Assembly: GCA_003427395.1 (NCBI GenBank)
Contig: BFEA01000039.1
Span: 230,895-294,894 of the forward strand
Length of the DNA stretch: 64,000 bases
Source: Chara braunii
Taxonomy: Eukaryota; Plantae; Charophyceae
Direction: 5' to 3'
Below are positions 15,588 to 44,805 of this stretch, in pieces (the first letter of the stretch is position 1; the number at the start of each line of letters is the position of its first letter). The translations under genes and the position numbers were made by a program. The notes beneath the pieces are model-generated. The model was not told where the DNA came from and made no database searches. It worked only from the letters and a program-made list of their open reading frames with translations.

Positions 15588-15780
15588 TCGTCACATATTT
15601 ATAACCCTTTATATATATACTGTCCGATAAACCGTAGGGAGAGAGAGAGAAGAGGACAACAAACATAGGGTTGTGACAAACTGTTTCGTCGGAGTTTCAC
15701 TTACTCATATATATACATACAGGATCACCAACCCATACGTACGAAGGTTCCCAAAACATAGGGTTGTGACAAACTGTTTG
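15588..15780 (-). mobile_element. Degenerate third copy of the hammerhead-bearing element in a TA-rich context
   Basis: Minus strand reads ATGAGTAAGTGAAACTCCGACGAAACAGTTTGTCACA...TGTGACGAT; partial re-duplication at 15755-15780. Confidence 0.7.
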
Positions 15781-26020: not shown

Positions 26021-26058
26021 CTGTCTCTTATACACATCTAGATGTGTATAAGAGACAG
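26021..26058. other. Nextera mate-pair junction adapter (assembly artefact)
   Basis: Exact CTGTCTCTTATACACATCT+AGATGTGTATAAGAGACAG, with a ~30-bp flank duplicated on either side. Confidence 0.98.
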
Positions 26059-31504: not shown

Positions 31505-32508
31505 AAAGGAAAGAAAAGAAACCTCTAATTCAGATCTCTTTTTTTCCCAGTTCTCATTCATTCGACGAGTTCCATCGGGATTCGTCCTTCAGAATATCCG
31601 TTAAAATTGGAACGATACAGAAAAGATCAGCATGACCCCTGCAAAAGGACAACACATTAATCGAGAAATGGTCCAGATCATAGATAACATAGAGAAAATA
31701 AATAAAGCTCCACCAGTTCAGATCAGATGGCTATCGAGCGCTTTTATTCCTGTTTGCATTGGTTCCTGCGAGCGAGCCTCCAGAGGTTTGGCAAGAGGTC
31801 TTCTTCAGCTCGCATAGTGAAAAATTAGCGCAAATTGACACAAACCGCCAAAGCAAACAGCGAGGTTATCTCAAGTGCAGTCATTACCCCACACAAAAAC
31901 AGAGGGTGGGTAGGTGTGTCAGGCTGCCTGTTATTTCCATTCCACACAAGGCATCGGTGAAACTGACATCAGGAAATGATTCTGGAAAAGACACCCATTT
32001 ATCCAGCAAAGGGTAAACGGGTGCCGTGGAGGCACGTTGCCCTCCGACACAAAGCATTTCAAAGACTAGACTTGCAGCATGGTACCTTCTAAGGGAGATA
32101 TAGTCCATGCACCATCGACAGCAGTTGCCATCATCATCTTGAGTTGGAGCATCCGGCGACGAATGACTCTCGCTTGCTTGCTCTATGTCTGTCATCCACA
32201 CACAAGAACACAATGAAAACGAAGGAAAACCAAAACACCGGCACTTCCTGATGGAACCTTTTCGTGACATGCACAAAGGCTGTACATCTCCATTGTCCAT
32301 TTCATCTTGGAAAAAGCAGCCCAATTTCATGCTATTGACCGGACACACGAAAAGACTCCAAAGTCAGAAGAACTGAAGACAATAGCAACCTAACATCGAG
32401 TCTTCTTCGGGTTCGGACCAATGCAGGGAGTAAGCGGACACAGGTTCAATGAATGAAGAAGCCACAGTCGCATTCCACATTAACAAGCATTGTAACACGG
32501 CCTTGACA

Positions 32509-35832: not shown

Positions 35833-35869
35833 CTGTCTCTTATACACATCTAGATGTGTATAAGAGACA
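35833..35869. other. Nextera mate-pair junction adapter at a gap edge (assembly artefact)
   Basis: Same palindromic adapter, directly before the N gap. Confidence 0.98.
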
Positions 35870-36697
35870 NNNNNNNNNNNNNNNNNNNNNNNNNNNNNNN
35901 NNNNNNNNNNNNNNNNNNNNNNNNNNNNNNNNNNNNNNNNNNNNNNNNNNNNNNNNNNNNNNNNNNNNNNNNNNNNNNNNNNNNNNNNNNNNNNNNNNNN
36001 NNNNNNNNNNNNNNNNNNNNNNNNNNNNNNNNNNNNNNNNNNNNNNNNNNNNNNNNNNNNNNNNNNNNNNNNNNNNNNNNNNNNNNNNNNNNNNNNNNNN
36101 NNNNNNNNNNNNNNNNNNNNNNNNNNNNNNNNNNNNNNNNNNNNNNNNNNNNNNNNNNNNNNNNNNNNNNNNNNNNNNNNNNNNNNNNNNNNNNNNNNNN
36201 NNNNNNNNNNNNNNNNNNNNNNNNNNNNNNNNNNNNNNNNNNNNNNNNNNNNNNNNNNNNNNNNNNNNNNNNNNNNNNNNNNNNNNNNNNNNNNNNNNNN
36301 NNNNNNNNNNNNNNNNNNNNNNNNNNNNNNNNNNNNNNNNNNNNNNNNNNNNNNNNNNNNNNNNNNNNNNNNNNNNNNNNNNNNNNNNNNNNNNNNNNNN
36401 NNNNNNNNNNNNNNNNNNNNNNNNNNNNNNNNNNNNNNNNNNNNNNNNNNNNNNNNNNNNNNNNNNNNNNNNNNNNNNNNNNNNNNNNNNNNNNNNNNNN
36501 NNNNNNNNNNNNNNNNNNNNNNNNNNNNNNNNNNNNNNNNNNNNNNNNNNNNNNNNNNNNNNNNNNNNNNNNNNNNNNNNNNNNNNNNNNNNNNNNNNNN
36601 NNNNNNNNNNNNNNNNNNNNNNNNNNNNNNNNNNNNNNNNNNNNNNNNNNNNNNNNNNNNNNNNNNNNNNNNNNNNNNNNNNNNNNNNNNNNNNNNN
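35870..36697. other. Scaffold gap (N run) inside the last PP2C intron; a smaller gap lies at 43613-43643
   Basis: Run of N. Confidence 1.
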
Positions 36698-38203
36698 TCT
36701 ATGTTTCTTATCCAGAGGAAGGCTCTTGTCTGTCTCAGGAATTTAACAGGGGGAAGGAGGAGTGAAAAGTGAGTGGAGACATGAAGCAGAGGACATGGCA
36801 GTAGGGGACCAGAAACCTCCATGTTTCTTATCCAGAGGAATGCTCTTGTCTGTCTCTGGAATCCGACGGATCCTCTTTACTGCCTGGAAGGGTTAGGAGG
36901 GAGAGGGGGAAGTGAAAAGTGAGGGTTTAACGGAAGGAGATGGCGAGAGGTAGATGTTGAGAGAGGTAGATAGGGGGAGATGGAGGTGGGGAAAGATACA
37001 GGTAGAAGGAAGATGGAGATGGGGTAAAGCGAAATGGGGAGGAAGAAGATTCCAATTGGAGAGGTAACATCTTGATGTGGGGAAGGAAATATGGAGCAGG
37101 ACGCCAACCGGTTGAGGTGGTGGCCATTGGGGGGAGGAGAAGGTAGCCAAGGGAGGAGGTAGATTCCGGCTCTCTCTATCTTGGTAGCAAGACAGCGAAG
37201 AAAAACATAAAATGGAGGACGACGTAACACGAGGAATAAGAGTGAGGAGAACAAGGATGAGGAGGAAGAGATGAAGAAGAAGAACGGCAATCTCCCTTGC
37301 TATTGGTGCAGAAGCGGAGACCACAATAGGCGAGAATGACTGAAGAATAACCATGACCAGGACGTGTCAATGGCGACGACGACAACCATCGCAGGGCAAA
37401 CAGGAACAGACTCGCCACGGGAGTTTTTCTGGGTACCGGGATTCGAATGTCCCAGAAAAACTGCCGAGGCTACTTCCCTGCCTGCTCCACTGACCGCGGA
37501 GATTTGTCAATCGCTGAAACACAAAACAGGGGCCTACCAGCCCCTGAAGAATTTCTCGAACACTGCCTGGCCATGTGCACGACCTCCACAAGGTTGCCAG
37601 GCACCTTTCCTGGTTCAACCCCACCCCCCTCTCCTCCAGAAGCTTGATTGGTGAACCTGCCCAGCCGAGCATCCACGCAGCCTACCAAGCAGTTCTCGAG
37701 CTGTGACCCTCAGCCAAGATCTGTCCGTATTGCAATGTTGCATAATTCCAGACGGCGGACTTTCTTTTTTTGAAACGTTAGCGTCCGAACCCAGGAAACC
37801 ACACCAAGACATCCAAACAGTCTGGATGGAATTCCATAAATCCAGATCATGACTGCGGTTCCAATCAGCGTTCTTAATTCCAGAGGCCGACAGCCAAAAG
37901 ACATTCCCAATGACCGACTTATCGTTTCCAGGCCATGCCAATCATTGTTTCCAGTCGGAACAACAGTTTACTTGTCCACCGTGATGACAACAGAATTGAC
38001 GGGCAATGAGGAGACTCGACAAAGTAAATCGTATATAGGCAAGAAGGTTGGAACAGCTTCAGTGCCAGGCCCACGCTAATGGTTATTTCCCCTCCCATGA
38101 GCAATATGCTCATCCACCATAAATTTATAATAATTCATCTGATGAAATCCAAGCCGATAAAGTGGACCGTCAGTAAAAAAAACTTATTGAACTAGCTACT
38201 TAC

Positions 38204-38278
38204 GTCGTTACTGACAACATCCCAGAGGCCATCGCTTGCAAGGACAAGAAACTCATCGGATGGATACACAATCTCGTC
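38204..38278 (-). CDS. PP2C: PP2C exon: DEIVYPSDEFLVLASDGLWDVVSND
   Basis: CAG acceptor and GTAAGT donor; catalytic ASDGLWD motif. Confidence 0.94.
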
Positions 38279-39009
38279 CTGCAAAATCCACCATAAGCAA
38301 GCACCCCACGGAGTCGTGCAAGTGTCAATGCACATACAGGACAAAAGCAACAAATGGCAACAACCTCAATCTGTAGGCAAGAAATTCACGACACACAACA
38401 TAAGTGACCTCAATCTGTATGGGCAACGTCGCAGCTTGGCTGGGAGCAGCGCCGCACATGCAGCAGCAGCAGTGCATTGCATGCAGCAGAAAAGTGAATG
38501 CCAACAGGACCACACACAAAGGGGAAGGTCGAAGTGAGGTTGAGAGGGGTCGCCAGGCAGCAGGCTACAGAACATTTTCCAACTCCCGCCTAACGCCCTA
38601 AGATACTTCAAAATCCGGCCATTCTTGGCCAGCGAACTCTTAAGATCCCAGAACGGCTGCCTGAGTTTTGTTCATATCGAGGCCCCGGTCCTGTTTTTTC
38701 TCTAAGCGCGGGCGACCTCCGCAAGGCTGCAGGAGGCCGCCCAGCCACTTCCTGACTGGGAGCCCCCACCAGCCAGAATGCTCTGGGGCCGATTAGGATC
38801 CTGCTGGACCGTCCGTCAGCCGAATCGACCGGGAGGGTTCAGCATGGAGGAGGGCTCCCTGGTCGAACAGGGGAGCAGCACTGAAATAAACAACTGTTCC
38901 TTAGAAATGGACAAAAAAGTGGAATAATCCGAATAAACATCTGTGAATTGAAACATGAAAAAAAAAAAATGAAAATAAAGCAAGCATGCATCCAACTCCA
39001 GATACATAC

Positions 39010-39101
39010 CACAATCTCCGGCTCTGCAGACACATACGGCTTAAGCATCTTGTCACCAAAAGCACGGGTTACAGCCAGCACTCCGCCAACTCTCCATGTA
39101 C
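39010..39101 (-). CDS. PP2C: PP2C exon: [31 protein letters not shown]
   Basis: CAG acceptor and GTATGT donor; the [17 protein letters not shown] motif is typical of plant clade F PP2Cs. Confidence 0.94.
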
Positions 39102-41683
39102 CTGCAATAAGCCCACTCAGCACGTTAAAAGTGGTGAAAAATAACAAAATCCCAAAAGTACGGACAACTTCAAACACCGTGTGAAAGCGAACAATCCCAA
39201 AATGCTTAGCCACAGAAAGCTGATTTGATATTCAGAGCAGACCCCACAAGTACAGAAACACAGGACTCTGACAGCATCCACCTGGTTGAAACCAAATTTG
39301 TCCTGCATTTAAGTAGGCATATAATTGAGCGGCTCTTTTCAGCCATATTAAGGCACACAGCGTCGCAACGTAAGGAATCCACAAGCCAATCTCGATACAC
39401 ATATCTTGATGGTCAGCAACCTGCAAAGGTTAGCCACAACAACTAAAGCAAAGGCTTTGCACCAGTTGCAGTGGCTCACCGCGTATTCCGCTTTCAAAGG
39501 GAGAAACAAGGCCATTGAAAGGGAGAAACAAAGTGATTCAGAGGGAGAAACAAGGTGATTGAGCAAGCATTCGCATGAGTGAGAATTGAACAGCACGTTC
39601 AGAGTGACACAGAAGTTCACATACAACACCATGTGCGATTTGAGGCACATCATTGACAACCTGCACCATTCAAAAGGTAACTGGCTGTTGACTTCTTTTC
39701 ATTAGACATTATTCATGCACTTGGCTATGTATATAGAATGCTAACACAGAACTATTATGTTCCCAAGCACTGAACTTTGTCATTAACCGCACACCACAAA
39801 TGGCTAATCAACAGAGCATCCCCGATGTGCTGCTGTCTCACATGACCTTGTACCTTGACGACCGACAGATCTGCACTCGCTACCGTCTTGACCCGAATCG
39901 AATGCCCGGTCATTATCACTCCATCTTGACTGGAAGTTGTCCCTTTCTTCAATAATGACCAGGCATTGTGTTCAAGTGAAGACGGTAGGGTATAGAACTT
40001 GTACCCTCAAATAGACCAAGACTTCCCATTGGGATCGCTCGCTTCCTCAAATACACAAAAGCTCTCCCAAACAACACATACACAGGTCAGCACATATGCA
40101 GTAATAAGGCATGTTTCTATGCCGTGAGGCTCACTGCCTCCACCCTCGTGGAAATGGCAAAGTCACCAAACTAAATGATCCCCTTGGAGACGTCGCAGTG
40201 CCATCCTCCATACCATCTGCTGAAGGATGTGCTTGGCAGTTGCAATGCTGTGTGAGGTTAACACCTCGAACCAATCGAAAGGACTTCAAGCCTTCAGCCA
40301 GGTCCAAGGTCCGGGGTCTCATTCTACCGAAGACCAAACGGAAGGCCCTGAGGCCAAAACACGACCGTAGGGTCCAGTTGGTCGGTAGGAAAGTCCAGTC
40401 ACTCCCAAACAAAAATAGCAGCAATGTCCAAGGACAATCCAGAAACATCCGGATCCGAGAAACAATTGCAGCCAACAGGGGAGGGACCAAAGGAGCTCAA
40501 GACTGTCAACTCGAACACGTACAAAAGCCACTTCAGTGCCAAAAGGGAATACTTGTTTGTTCAAACTGTTGCAACAGTGCCGCTGGTTGCTACAGCCACT
40601 TCGGGTTTGACTTGGTCGGGCACAGTAGGGTAGTCTATGGCGCTGGGCACCATAGATAGGACCTTAGGGTTGAAGGAGAAGAAGGCCGAGGGCTGAATGT
40701 GAGAGGTAGAAAGGTCCACGGCCTCCAGAGAGGGAAGTGATCTCGGGGAGAGAGAGAGAGAGAGGACCGTACCTGATGTGAAGTTCGTAGGCTGCCATAG
40801 CCTTCTGCTGTACAATAATTTTCGAGCTTCTATAATAAACGAGTTCCAAGTTCTCAGGCTGTTTCGATCTCATTGCCTTGTGTACCGAGTTTGGTGTAGG
40901 GACAAATCGTGGCCATGCACGTGTGCTGAACCACCGTTAATTGCGCTTCGACCACTGCAAATAATCCAAGCGCACCCCTTAAAAGCATTGCACGTCCACT
41001 CCCATAGACTACAACACCTGCTGGATGTGTTTGGCCTCCAGCCCATCACATACAAGAGAAGACTTCCCACCACTTTGCCAGAACAAGAAAAAAAACTTAA
41101 TCCAACGGCAACCCTCTTTCGCTGCCTTGGCAGAACTCAAAGGTCCCAGTGGAACGTCCATCCCACACTGATAGTGAACAAGAGCTGAGGAAGCTCAGGA
41201 GACACCTCAAAGAGAAACACATGATAAACACTTTTGATTCTTCGAAACGAACCTTTTGACTCACATCCATAGCAGGAACGCTTTCTCACACATTGTGGCC
41301 TCTTCAAAAATCAAATGGCCGCGAATTGACTGTGCAGTATGTACCGCGCACGGGCCAGGAGCGCAGCCCGTCCGGAGCGAGGACCAGTGCAGGGCAGGGC
41401 AGGCGTCCCGGACTGCAAAGCCATGACGAGCAGGCTTTTCTTTTTTTCCTTGCCTGGAGTTCAGGGGTGTGCCAAGGCCGTTTTTTTCCTCAGCTGGAAT
41501 TTTCGAAGCACCGGTAGAATGTTTTTTTTGTAGGCTAATGCCCACAGTTGAATTCAAACAAAGAACACTCAATACAGGTTTCAGCATCCTTGGATGCAAT
41601 AGGTTCATCTCATCCGATCAACAGCATTCAGAAGACACAGATAGTCTTGGGAGATTTCGTCAGAACCTCTGCCAGAGACTCAC

Positions 41684-41770
41684 CCGCCCACATGATGACA
41701 CCGCCAGCATCCTTAATACGCTTCTGTTCCTCCAGCTTGCTGGGCTTATGGTCCGTCGAGAGGGGATGCG
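41684..41770 (-). CDS. PP2C: PP2C exon: AHPLSTDHKPSKLEEQKRIKDAGGVIMWA-G
   Basis: CAG acceptor and GTGAGT donor; LSxDHKP and ExxRIxxAGG motifs. Confidence 0.93.
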
Positions 41771-42488
41771 CTGCACATTGTCAACCACATCAGTCAGATG
41801 AGTCATTCATCATTGCCGACGCCTACATAGCAGTATGAGGTCCACTCGCAGGGAGCTATGAGTTCGAGAACGTCAAGATCATACGTCTCTTACATTGTGA
41901 AGATGCATTTCAGTGTGTGCACTCACTGACACACTGACAAATAACAGCCAGGCAACAACCTCAAGTTTTGCTCAAGTTAAAGAGCCCTGTTATCAGAAAG
42001 TTGCTTTTTATTATGTCAAAAGCAAACTTAACAACAGAAGAACAAATCAGAAATCCCTACATATATAACTATCACTAATTTTCGGCCTGTGACATTCAGA
42101 CGATCGGGCCCCTGCGATTTTACAGTCCGCGACGGTCCCGATCGTCTGCTGATCGTTTGCTCTTAGAAGTTGAACCATCGCGTGCGGCTCCGCGCCAGGG
42201 CCTGTACTGGGCCCACGCACCAGCGGTGGTACCAAAGCGTGTTACCGGCCCTACTGCACGCGGTACCCCGGTACCGCGCGACGCGCTACCAGTTTAGCGC
42301 CGCTACCGGTCCAGCACCGCAACAACGTATAGAGACTACTTTCTGGGGCACACGCACAGCGGACTTGAGGGCAGGTATACAGGAAGGCGAGTTAGAGTCG
42401 ACGCCTGTTCGACAAAGCTACTCAACTGAGCTACGCTACACCTCTAGAGTCGACGCCTATTTTCGACACACCTGTTTTTCACACTCAA

Positions 42489-42615
42489 GCTACTCGACTG
42501 ACTTCTACGCTGCTATGCACCACTACGACTTCCACACGCGCACCGGCACACAGCTTCTCGACTGACTTCTACTCTGCTCTGCACGACTACGACTTCCACA
42601 CGCGCACCGGCACAC
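42489..42615. repeat. 63-bp tandem duplication just upstream of the hammerhead
   Basis: CTCGACTGACTTCTAC...CACGCGCACCGGCACAC x2. Confidence 0.9.
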
Positions 42616-42665
42616 GCACACGAGAAAGTGGCGAGTCCTTGGCCATCCGTACAGTTCATCTTGGG

Positions 42666-42722
42666 CGGACTGTTGGGGTTCAACCTCCTGATGAGTCGGT
42701 GGAAGTCCGACGAAACAGTCTG
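42666..42722 (+). ncRNA. Type III hammerhead ribozyme
   Basis: Stem III CGGACTGT/ACAGTCTG; GTT triplet at 42672-42674; stem I GGGGT-TCA-ACCTC; CTGATGA at 42688-42694; stem II GTCGG-TGGAAGT-CCGAC; GAAA at 42712-42715. Confidence 0.9.
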
Positions 42723-42990
42723 GCTGAGTCATGATGTGAGTTCTGTATAGCGAACATAACAACACTCACACATACGCATACTCGCACACACACAAACAAA
42801 CACACACACACTCACCCAGGACACACCATCTCTACATTCTGAATGTTGGACGCTGAGGCCTGAGCTGTGCAGCGGCAAGGCTTTCAAACGACCGCACCTT
42901 GATGACTGACGGTGAGTTTGTTATTCGCGTCTGTTGCTTTCATTTTGTGGTCTTGGAACTATGAGAGAGAGAGTGTGTGTACGTGTCCGC

Positions 42991-43047
<57 letters not shown>

Positions 43048-43786
43048 TCGAACTTGGTGCCTCCTCCCCCCCACGATCAAGTGCAGTATCTTCTTCGATC
43101 AGTTTCATATTCGATCCTCCCTCCCCGCACGATCGAGCGTATTATCTGCTCCGTCCGGTTTCGTATCTCATCCGCGGTCCATTGAGACCTTTCTATTGTA
43201 CAAAAGAAAAAAGAAGCACGCGAGGTCGTGCGCATACACGGGAGGGAGAGAGAGGGGGAGAGAGAGAGAGAGAACCCAACTATGCACCCCCTCCCTCTCT
43301 CCTCCCCCCCCACCCACACACACACACANGATCAAGTGCAGTATCTGCTTCCATCAGTTTCATATCCGATCTTCTCCAATGATCAAGCGTAGTAGCTGCT
43401 CCGTTCAGTTTCATATCTTATCCGTGGTTCATCGATATTTTATAAGAGGGAAAAAAAGTAGTAGCTGCTCCGTTCAGTTTCATATCTTATCCGTGGTTCA
43501 TCGATATTTTATAAGAGGGAAAAAAGCACCTGCGTGCTTGAGCGAATGAGAGCGAGCGAGAGAGAGTGAGAGGGTGGGGTGGGGGGTCCATCGAGATGGT
43601 TTAAACGCAATCNNNNNNNNNNNNNNNNNNNNNNNNNNNNNNNNGAGAGAGAGAGAGAGAGAGAGAGGGAAGCATGAGCGATTTCGGAAATAAAAGAAAC
43701 CGGAAACACAAGTGATTTCGGGGGGGGGGGAAAAAAGTAAAGGGAAGTGGGCGCGTGCACGCATGCAGCCGCAAGAGGTAAGACGC

Positions 43787-43818
<32 letters not shown>

Positions 43819-44176
43819 GCCATCAACTTCTTGGCAAACTTTTCATTTTTATTGCGGGGGTAGCCGCAACAGGTCCCCTAGTCTGCATATAAAAAAATTT
43901 AAACTTCGCAGTCGCCTCCTAGCAGATGTTTCGTACACAAACAAAAAAAAAAAAAAACTCAGAAAAAGAGAAGACAAAAATTAAGCTACCAGGGGATCCC
44001 GTGCCTCAGTATCCACTTTTCCAGACATCCAGAGAATTGCCCTCCCAGATGACTTATCAACTGTCCAATACACACCCTGGCTGCACAAGCCCCCCCCACT
44101 CGAAGAAGCCACCAATGGCTCGAATTTGACAACATCAGAAAAGAACACCACCTGCAGCCTCACTGCTGTGGGAGCT

Positions 44177-44226
<50 letters not shown>

Positions 44227-44643
44227 TCTCTTCTCTGGATCCAAAGAAGGGACTAGAGTGGAGGCCTTTGGGACAGGACGGCCTGCCTTGAAAACTGACC
44301 ACTACCAGCGCATCCTATTCCAGAACCTATGCCCATTGACAAGCATCTTACGATTGCCAGCCCCCGTTCCAGGTCCCCATAGGGACATACACTGTAACAT
44401 GCCACATAGGCCCCCAAAACGAGTTTGCAAATACCAACAGACAACAGGTCAACCCAGGAAACATCAGTGCATACAAAGAGCAGGCGACAGTAGGATCGGA
44501 TCCACTCATGCAATGCAATATCAGTACCTTTGTCAGACTGTGAGATGGCCAACAGAAGGAACGCAAACACTATAAAAACAGCCATACAATCATTTACAAT
44601 GTCTTACAATTATCCCGTCCCAGGCTCAGCATGTGCTCCTTAC

Positions 44644-44805
44644 CTTTTCCTTTCCTGCACAAGACCACTCTGGAATCACCAACATTGGCCACAACGAGCC
44701 TTTTCCCCACGAGTACAGCAGTGGATGCTGTTGAACCAGCGTCTCTGCTCTGGCCATTGTCTTCCATATTGATGTATGCTTCATCAGTCTGCAAATACAC
44801 CTCAC
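44644..44805 (-). CDS. PP2C: PP2C exon: [11 protein letters not shown]...[33 protein letters not shown]
   Basis: CAG acceptor and GTAAG donor; GSTA and ANVGDSR motifs; 162 nt, phase 1/1. Confidence 0.94.

Follow-up and report, generated by a model that had tools for sequence, protein, structure and literature searches.

A PP2C intron in the alga Chara braunii carries a complete type III hammerhead ribozyme, which a reading of the sequence together with Rfam and descriptor scans places at 42666-42722 (plus strand) of a 64,000-nucleotide stretch of contig BFEA01000039.1 (hereafter, the window). This hammerhead is a slightly decayed member of a very abundant family and is ordinary for the C. braunii genome. 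On the evidence presented here, it is likely that the copy is an inert insertion of ~150 nt from an abundant, non-coding type III hammerhead retroelement family, which targets microsatellites and is of the Penelope-like (Chlamys) type.

On the plus strand, 42666-42722 reads GGACUGU-U / GGGGU-UCA-ACCUC / CUGAUGA / GUCGG-UGGAAGU-CCGAC / GAAA / CAGUCU. Stem III (8 bp) joins 42666-42673 to 42715-42722, stem I (5 bp, loop UCA) joins 42675-42679 to 42683-42687, and stem II (5 bp, loop UGGAAGU) joins 42695-42699 to 42707-42711. The core box CUGAUGA occupies 42688-42694 and GAAA occupies 42712-42715, with A42715 paired to U42673. Helices I and II are closed by loops and helix III is open, as in type III, and the core positions C3-A9, G12-A14, A15.1-U16.1 and G10.1-C11.1 are canonical throughout. 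The cleavage triplet of this copy is GUU (42672-42674), with U17 at 42674 and the cut predicted between 42674 and 42675; under the NUH rule, GUU can be cleaved, more slowly than GUC.

The Rfam model Hammerhead_3 (RF00008) matches 42667-42721 (plus strand) over its whole length (1-54/54) at 46.9 bits, with an E-value of 1.6e-9 for the local stretch and 3.8e-7 for the whole 64-kb window. With the curated gathering score at 48.5, a scan run at that threshold misses the hammerhead by 1.6 bits, and the match was recovered with permissive, E-value-based filters. The deficit probably stems from the non-consensus U17 and loop 2. Our own descriptor scan returned a single match in the window, which coincides exactly with 42666-42722 and has 5, 5 and 8 bp in stems I, II and III; the 30 shuffled windows gave no match. 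Neither the Rfam E-value search nor the descriptor scan found a second complete hammerhead in the 64 kb. The preliminary description of this DNA, made from its letters, had reported a full type III core with three stems and named a Hammerhead_3 covariance search as the check; the full-model match, albeit under the gathering score, the descriptor hit and the empty shuffles bear out that reading.

Stem III had also been said to extend further, from 42660 on one side and 42724 on the other, and five additional pairs do form in the fold, 42660-42664 with 42724-42728 (C-G, U-A, U-G, G-U and G-C), for a total of 13. A 1x1 internal loop separates them from stem III proper within 42660-42728. Most of the family depth carries T42661C, T42725A and G42726C, with no compensation for the extension, which is specific to the intron copy and not a family trait. 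Under a nearest-neighbour model, the hammerhead fold of 42660-42728 has a free energy of -26.9 kcal/mol versus a minimum of -28.3 kcal/mol, the alternative being a long hairpin that lies 1.4 kcal/mol lower. The active fold is thus plausible, but the hairpin competes with it.

The PP2C exons lie on the minus strand, with Pfam PF00481 matches at 44597-44800 (E 6.1e-12), 38842-39213 (E 7.7e-09) and 38195-38353 (E 3.9e-06), so that the plus-strand hammerhead is antisense to the gene and intronic. The exons were handled singly. The gene is of streptophyte type, in keeping with C. braunii as its source. Because profile positions 137-159 of PF00481 were absent between two of the PP2C pieces, we searched the minus-strand frames and located the conserved block HPLSTDHKPSKLEEQKRIKDAGGVIMWAG, which marks a small PP2C exon at 41684-41770 (minus strand). 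This exon has AG and GT borders, its frame continues that of exon 44644-44788, and stranded RNA reads cover it at 51-63x in one direction only; the reading frame across the intron joins VLCRKGK-A-HPLSTDHKP. It divides an apparent 5.4-kb intron into two, and the intron that hosts the hammerhead spans 41771-44643 on the minus strand (2,873 nt), with the hammerhead 896 nt from exon 41684-41770 and 1,922 nt from exon 44644-44788. The antisense, intronic placement that had been proposed therefore stands on the minus-strand PF00481 exons, but the intron is shorter than was thought. Since the hammerhead is antisense, the host pre-mRNA holds only its inactive complement, which agrees with the earlier suggestion that this orientation spares the pre-mRNA from cleavage; that selection produced the orientation is a plausible conjecture.

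The same intron contains two other dispersed repeats, at 42053-42200 and 42842-42933, each at ~240-250x the single-copy DNA word depth and with low RNA coverage on both strands. It also holds an exact 69-bp tandem duplication and related 51-56-bp units amid GT/GA microsatellites (43389-43525, 43060-43185 and 43327-43435), and weak miRNA-model matches at 43223-43325 (minus strand), in low-complexity GA-rich sequence, that look like chance.

Family abundance and consensus were read from sequencing data aligned to 41600-42960 (1,361 letters) at a threshold of 85% likeness. The runs were X1 (DNA, as Logan contigs), X5 (contigs, guessed to be RNA), and X21 and X22 (raw stranded oligo-dT RNA-seq); exon 41684-41770 calibrates the strand, minus-strand RNA corresponding to ‘first mate on +’. 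From the DNA run X1, 4,286 contigs align to the stretch. Word depth is 577,000 in 42658-42703 and 321,000 in 42704-42749, with a peak of 1.18 million at 42702, and 16.1 in the single-copy flank. The ~45-nt ribozyme core thus stands at ~36,000x single-copy depth, a ratio of summed contig depth and not a strict copy number; taken with the 4,286 contigs, it puts family size in the range of 10^4 copies. Similarity to other copies ends before 42657, 42676 or 42684 and behind 42719-42733, and the part common to the family is essentially little more than the ribozyme. Beyond it, the flanks of other copies are heterogeneous, and the loose-end consensuses place (TA)n or (CA)n directly upstream of truncated copies. 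Short ‘goes back’ joints in the DNA contigs, from 42718-42732 to 42668-42692, indicate that some genomic copies lie in short tandems.

At position 42674, where the intron copy has T, C accounts for 86,879 of the family's 107,036 DNA depth units, although this 81% describes the collinear subfamilies, as ~9% of the core depth aligns through that position. In RNA reads the share of C is 68-80%. The next base is G, and it follows that the family triplet is GUC and that the intron copy has undergone C-to-T decay at a CpG, the origin of GUU that the preliminary description had put forward.

The copy itself is short. DNA word depth is 1610 in 42612-42657 (~100-fold) versus 8.4 in 42566-42611, which is unique. 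Between 12 and 23 contigs reach 42623-42648 and end near 42610 (DNA contig variants), and 23 contigs carry 42734 and extend to ~42762. These ends and the depth step put the repeated unit of the copy's subfamily at about 42612-42760 on the plus strand, ~150 nt with no open reading frame. It spans ~55 nt before and ~85 nt after the cut site, so that the ribozyme sits mid-unit, its end 38 nt short of the 3' edge. The locus had been described as the end of a non-autonomous ribozyme-bearing retroelement; a non-coding, ribozyme-bearing family is what we find, but the ribozyme lies within a small unit and not at the end of a larger one.

On the left, the unit follows the CA-rich tract CACACGCACACGAG, and on the right it meets a degenerate CA-rich microsatellite that TRF places at 42762-42815 (plus strand), directly 3' of the element and beginning 39 nt after the ribozyme, in keeping with the CA-rich sequence noted there before. 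This (CA)n is presumably the insertion target. Further upstream is a tandem duplication in two copies (42488-42551 and 42552-42615, plus strand, 94% identical). It had been noticed earlier as well and is indeed present, but it is 64 bp long and not 63, and the unique depth of 42566-42611 shows that it is local to the 5' flank and outside the family unit.

Relatives elsewhere in the window clarify how such units are built. A decayed, 5'-truncated copy of the main family lies at 6351-6461 (minus strand) and begins with the core box (CTGATGC), which is 13 nt past the cut site; its core (6427-6461, minus strand) is identical to the intron copy at 31 of 35 bases. The tail, GTTTGTCACA.CCCCTCG..., is followed by (TA)n at 6318-6350 with no poly(A), and upstream of the copy is a different repeat that recurs at 2885-2944. 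Where RNA reads diverge from the intron copy behind 42719, their dominant loose-end consensus is this tail (agreement 0.91-0.93), so the copy at 6351-6461 represents the main expressed subfamily. A second 5'-truncated main-family copy, at 15619-15708 (minus strand), begins inside the CUGAUGAG box, is 88% identical to the first over 82 nt and has (TA)n on both sides, again without poly(A); a scrap of the main-family tail lies at 15750-15779. The two copies have a common 3' tail and different 5' starts within the ribozyme, and main-family tails extend ~80-95 nt beyond the ribozyme. A common 3' end, variable 5' truncation, absence of poly(A) and microsatellite flanks are, taken together, what target-primed reverse transcription into simple repeats leaves behind. 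Adjoining the copy at 6351-6461 is a fragment of eukaryotic 18S rRNA (6580-7075, plus strand, well aligned at 6850-7075) in AT-rich surroundings, in what appears as a patchwork of fragments.

Elements with these habits are already described in this alga. Craig, Yushenova, Rodriguez and Arkhipova (2021; PMC8557442) reported that, among Penelope-like elements (PLEs) with an N-terminal endonuclease, canonical hammerheads occur only in C. braunii and spike moss subclades. Their Chlamys-2_cBra has ‘a canonical 3'-HHR’ and a gag-like upstream ORF, and the PLE-X type of C. braunii likewise bears hammerheads. The insertion targets of Chlamys elements are (CA)n and (C)n, 5' truncation is frequent among them, and in C. 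braunii they have multiplied to very high copy numbers; in Chlamydomonas the non-autonomous Chlamys elements have 3' ends in common with autonomous ones (PMC8557442). Our family resembles the Chara Chlamys and PLE-X elements in having a hammerhead near the 3' end of the unit, insertion at (CA)n, 5' truncation and high copy number in the same genome; like Chlamys-type elements, its copies sit in microsatellites without poly(A) and have a common 3' end with variable 5' truncation. The intron copy differs from them in having neither an ORF (gag-like, reverse transcriptase or endonuclease) nor a pseudo-LTR and in being only ~150 nt long, and short non-coding hammerhead elements in Chara are absent from the description in PMC8557442. 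With no ORF for a reverse transcriptase carrying an N-terminal GIY-YIG endonuclease, the copy is at best non-autonomous or truncated: either a member of a dedicated non-autonomous family or what 5' truncation has left of the 3' end of an autonomous Chlamys element with a hammerhead. Chlamydomonas non-autonomous Chlamys elements such as MRC1 are similarly non-coding, and the MRC1 type shares its 3' end with autonomous Chlamys, but these elements have no canonical hammerheads and occur with pseudo-LTRs or in head-to-tail arrays (PMC8557442).

The intron copy fits the published PLE frame in every feature tested, a set to which identity with the 3' end of Chlamys-2_cBra does not belong. The family would spread into microsatellites by target-primed reverse transcription, with reverse transcriptase and endonuclease most likely supplied by Chlamys-type PLEs of the same genome. 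A PLE reverse transcriptase would copy the family RNA at (CA)n or (TA)n, with priming from nicks made there by the endonuclease. Before this reinsertion, the ribozyme probably cuts read-through or tandem transcripts down to single units. In the intron copy, ~55 nt are kept upstream of the cut site, so the template RNA must have been uncut at this ribozyme, or multimeric. The copy would now be inert, being antisense, having no transcription in the ribozyme sense and carrying a triplet decayed from GUC to GUU.

No Pfam domain was found in the ORFs surrounding the motif, and Pfam searches of 19 ORFs, around it and across the window (long ORFs included), gave no remnant of a reverse transcriptase, endonuclease or gag. 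That no PLE reverse transcriptase or GIY-YIG ORF appears in the window ORFs tested speaks against the PLE link and is compatible with a different view, in which a hammerhead retroposon or satellite-like repeat was mobilised without PLEs, either by a LINE partner with microsatellite-like 3' tails or by rolling-circle or tandem amplification, and the microsatellites are the repeat's own tails and not its targets. Two further observations suit such an origin: the ‘goes back’ joints, by which some copies are tandem, and the many subfamilies that end in T-runs (loose ends behind 42721-42733). However, the 15.6-kb copy has (TA)n on both sides and the intron copy CA-rich sequence on both sides, as fits insertion into a repeat, and the combination of a hammerhead, microsatellite targeting and 5' truncation is a published signature of PLEs, those of C. 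braunii included (PMC8557442). Mobilisation without PLEs is therefore unlikely in our assessment. The link to PLEs is most likely the correct one by analogy, through insertion style and literature and not through sequence identity to the Chlamys-2_cBra consensus.

Expression data bear on a second alternative, that the ribozyme has been domesticated at the PP2C locus, for example to process an antisense transcript, as one might ask by comparison with the conserved intronic hammerheads of amniotes. In its favor, nothing in the core is damaged, and the hammerhead fold comes within 1.4 kcal/mol of the minimum. Family RNA is found on both strands (~61% in the ribozyme sense), but 96-98% of the RNA reads on the core continue into sequence unlike the locus, which means that core RNA comes from other copies. 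In the unique flank 42566-42611, RNA depth is 2.0 in the gene sense (pre-mRNA) and 0.15 in the ribozyme sense, versus 63 in the exon; the intron copy has no detectable transcription in the ribozyme sense. Domestication is further opposed by the fact that this is one of roughly 10^4 copies, antisense to the gene and with a triplet decayed relative to the family, and we disfavour it as very improbable. A scan for promoters and terminators gave no match, with models that are bacterial and a host that is eukaryotic.

For the family as a whole, an RNA depth of ~2,300 over ~10^4 copies is, per copy, roughly a thousand times below the PP2C exon, and the family RNA fits mostly passive read-through transcription. 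Read starts in X21 and X22 do not accumulate at the cut site (42675), a weak test given oligo-dT libraries and a locus silent in the ribozyme sense, and the reads contain no back-joints or circular joints, although poly(A) selection under-represents circles. Both results count against the reading we prefer, an inert PLE-type insertion, to the extent that they leave in vivo activity of the ribozyme without support.

A third candidate is a remnant of a plant-type LTR retrozyme, either its solo LTR or a fragment. The resemblance is real, in that plant LTR retrozymes (Cervera, Urbina and de la Pena, 2016; PMC4918200) are also type III, non-autonomous and from the green lineage, and Chara is a streptophyte. 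They have, however, two direct LTRs of ~350 bp that each contain a hammerhead and lie 0.6-1 kb apart, a primer-binding site (PBS), a polypurine tract (PPT), 4-bp duplications and circular RNAs of 600-1000 nt, none of which is seen here. We found no long direct repeats or LTRs flanking the hammerhead and no second hammerhead, and the tRNA-Met primer-binding site TGGTATCAGAGC has no match in the whole window at up to one mismatch; these searches covered hammerheads, direct repeats and the PBS. In addition, the conserved unit is only ~45-150 nt, its relatives are 5'-truncated and lie within microsatellites, and RNA reads have no back-joints. An LTR retrozyme is likewise very improbable. The preliminary description had named Penelope pseudo-LTRs and plant retrozymes as known bearers of hammerheads; neither fits the locus as it stands, which has no LTRs, second hammerhead or tRNA-Met primer site and no canonical pseudo-LTR. 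A chance match to the hammerhead consensus, for which one might cite the score 1.6 bits under the Rfam gathering score, is refuted by the E-value of 3.8e-7, the lack of any match in shuffled sequence and the thousands of related copies in the DNA and RNA runs.

Animal non-LTR retrozymes (PMC7229834; bioRxiv 10.64898/2026.07.22.740005) offer another comparison, being likewise short, non-coding and hammerhead-bearing, with PLE machinery thought to be needed; in the 2026 preprint, the type I retrozymes of animals are argued to have arisen from PLEs as non-autonomous elements. They differ in being type I, in forming tandem monomers of ~170-400 nt and in yielding abundant circular RNAs, whereas the intron copy is type III and single, and no circular joints are seen. 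We rejected an assignment to the animal type on the type III topology and the single copy at the locus, while noting that some other genomic copies do lie in short tandems.

We also raise, tentatively and with less than even confidence, the possibility that the family is a dedicated non-autonomous type III family, at least ~10^4 copies strong, that depends on Chlamys PLEs for mobilisation in trans in a streptophyte alga and in which the ribozyme sets the 5' end of the template, i.e., a ‘type III non-LTR retrozyme’. If true, the family would bridge the plant LTR retrozymes (type III) and the animal PLE-derived retrozymes (type I). PLE-dependent type III ‘retrozymes’ in a streptophyte alga would bear on the kinship of plant and animal ribozyme-bearing retroelements, a question for the family level and the whole genome. 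The locus itself is of little weight, as it is silent and decayed and canonical hammerheads in Chara PLEs are already published. What it provides is a corrected PP2C gene model, a clean type III fold with nothing missing that could be used in vitro, a read-based GUC consensus with CpG decay eroding the cleavage site, and an order-of-magnitude estimate of family abundance.

When metagenome and viral contigs were scanned for the pattern of the family core, no further copies turned up, only unrelated type III hammerheads. Two of these, in contigs L002 (8190-8244, minus strand) and L004 (3440-3494, plus strand), which are the same contigs as L005 and L006 of IMG/VR, are complete and score 53.6 bits, above the gathering score. 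The contigs are phage-like and 19-21 kb long, and in them a ribosome-binding site and ATG follow the hammerhead by ~30 nt. Its 29-nt core and stem II are those of the algal family, but its stems I and III are unrelated. The presence of this 29-nt core and stem II in unrelated phage-like and other metagenome contigs, where stems I and III differ, speaks against descent argued from core likeness, since similarity of the core alone is then no proof of common descent. Two near-identical 2.47-kb metagenome contigs, L001 (1516-1570, plus strand) and L003 (1368-1422, minus strand), each carry a type III hammerhead of 45.9 bits.

At the gathering score, the Rfam scan of the window returned only the 18S fragment and a U6-like gene. 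The latter, at 31580-31682 (plus strand), resembles U6 snRNA over the full Rfam model at 71.3 bits, and there is a weak second U6-like match at 5724-5788 (minus strand). Finally, 26021-26058 and 35833-35870 are inverted pairs of the Nextera mosaic end CTGTCTCTTATACACATCT, the second of them beside an N gap. They are mate-pair adaptor residue in the assembly and appear as VSYTHLDVYKR in ORF translations.
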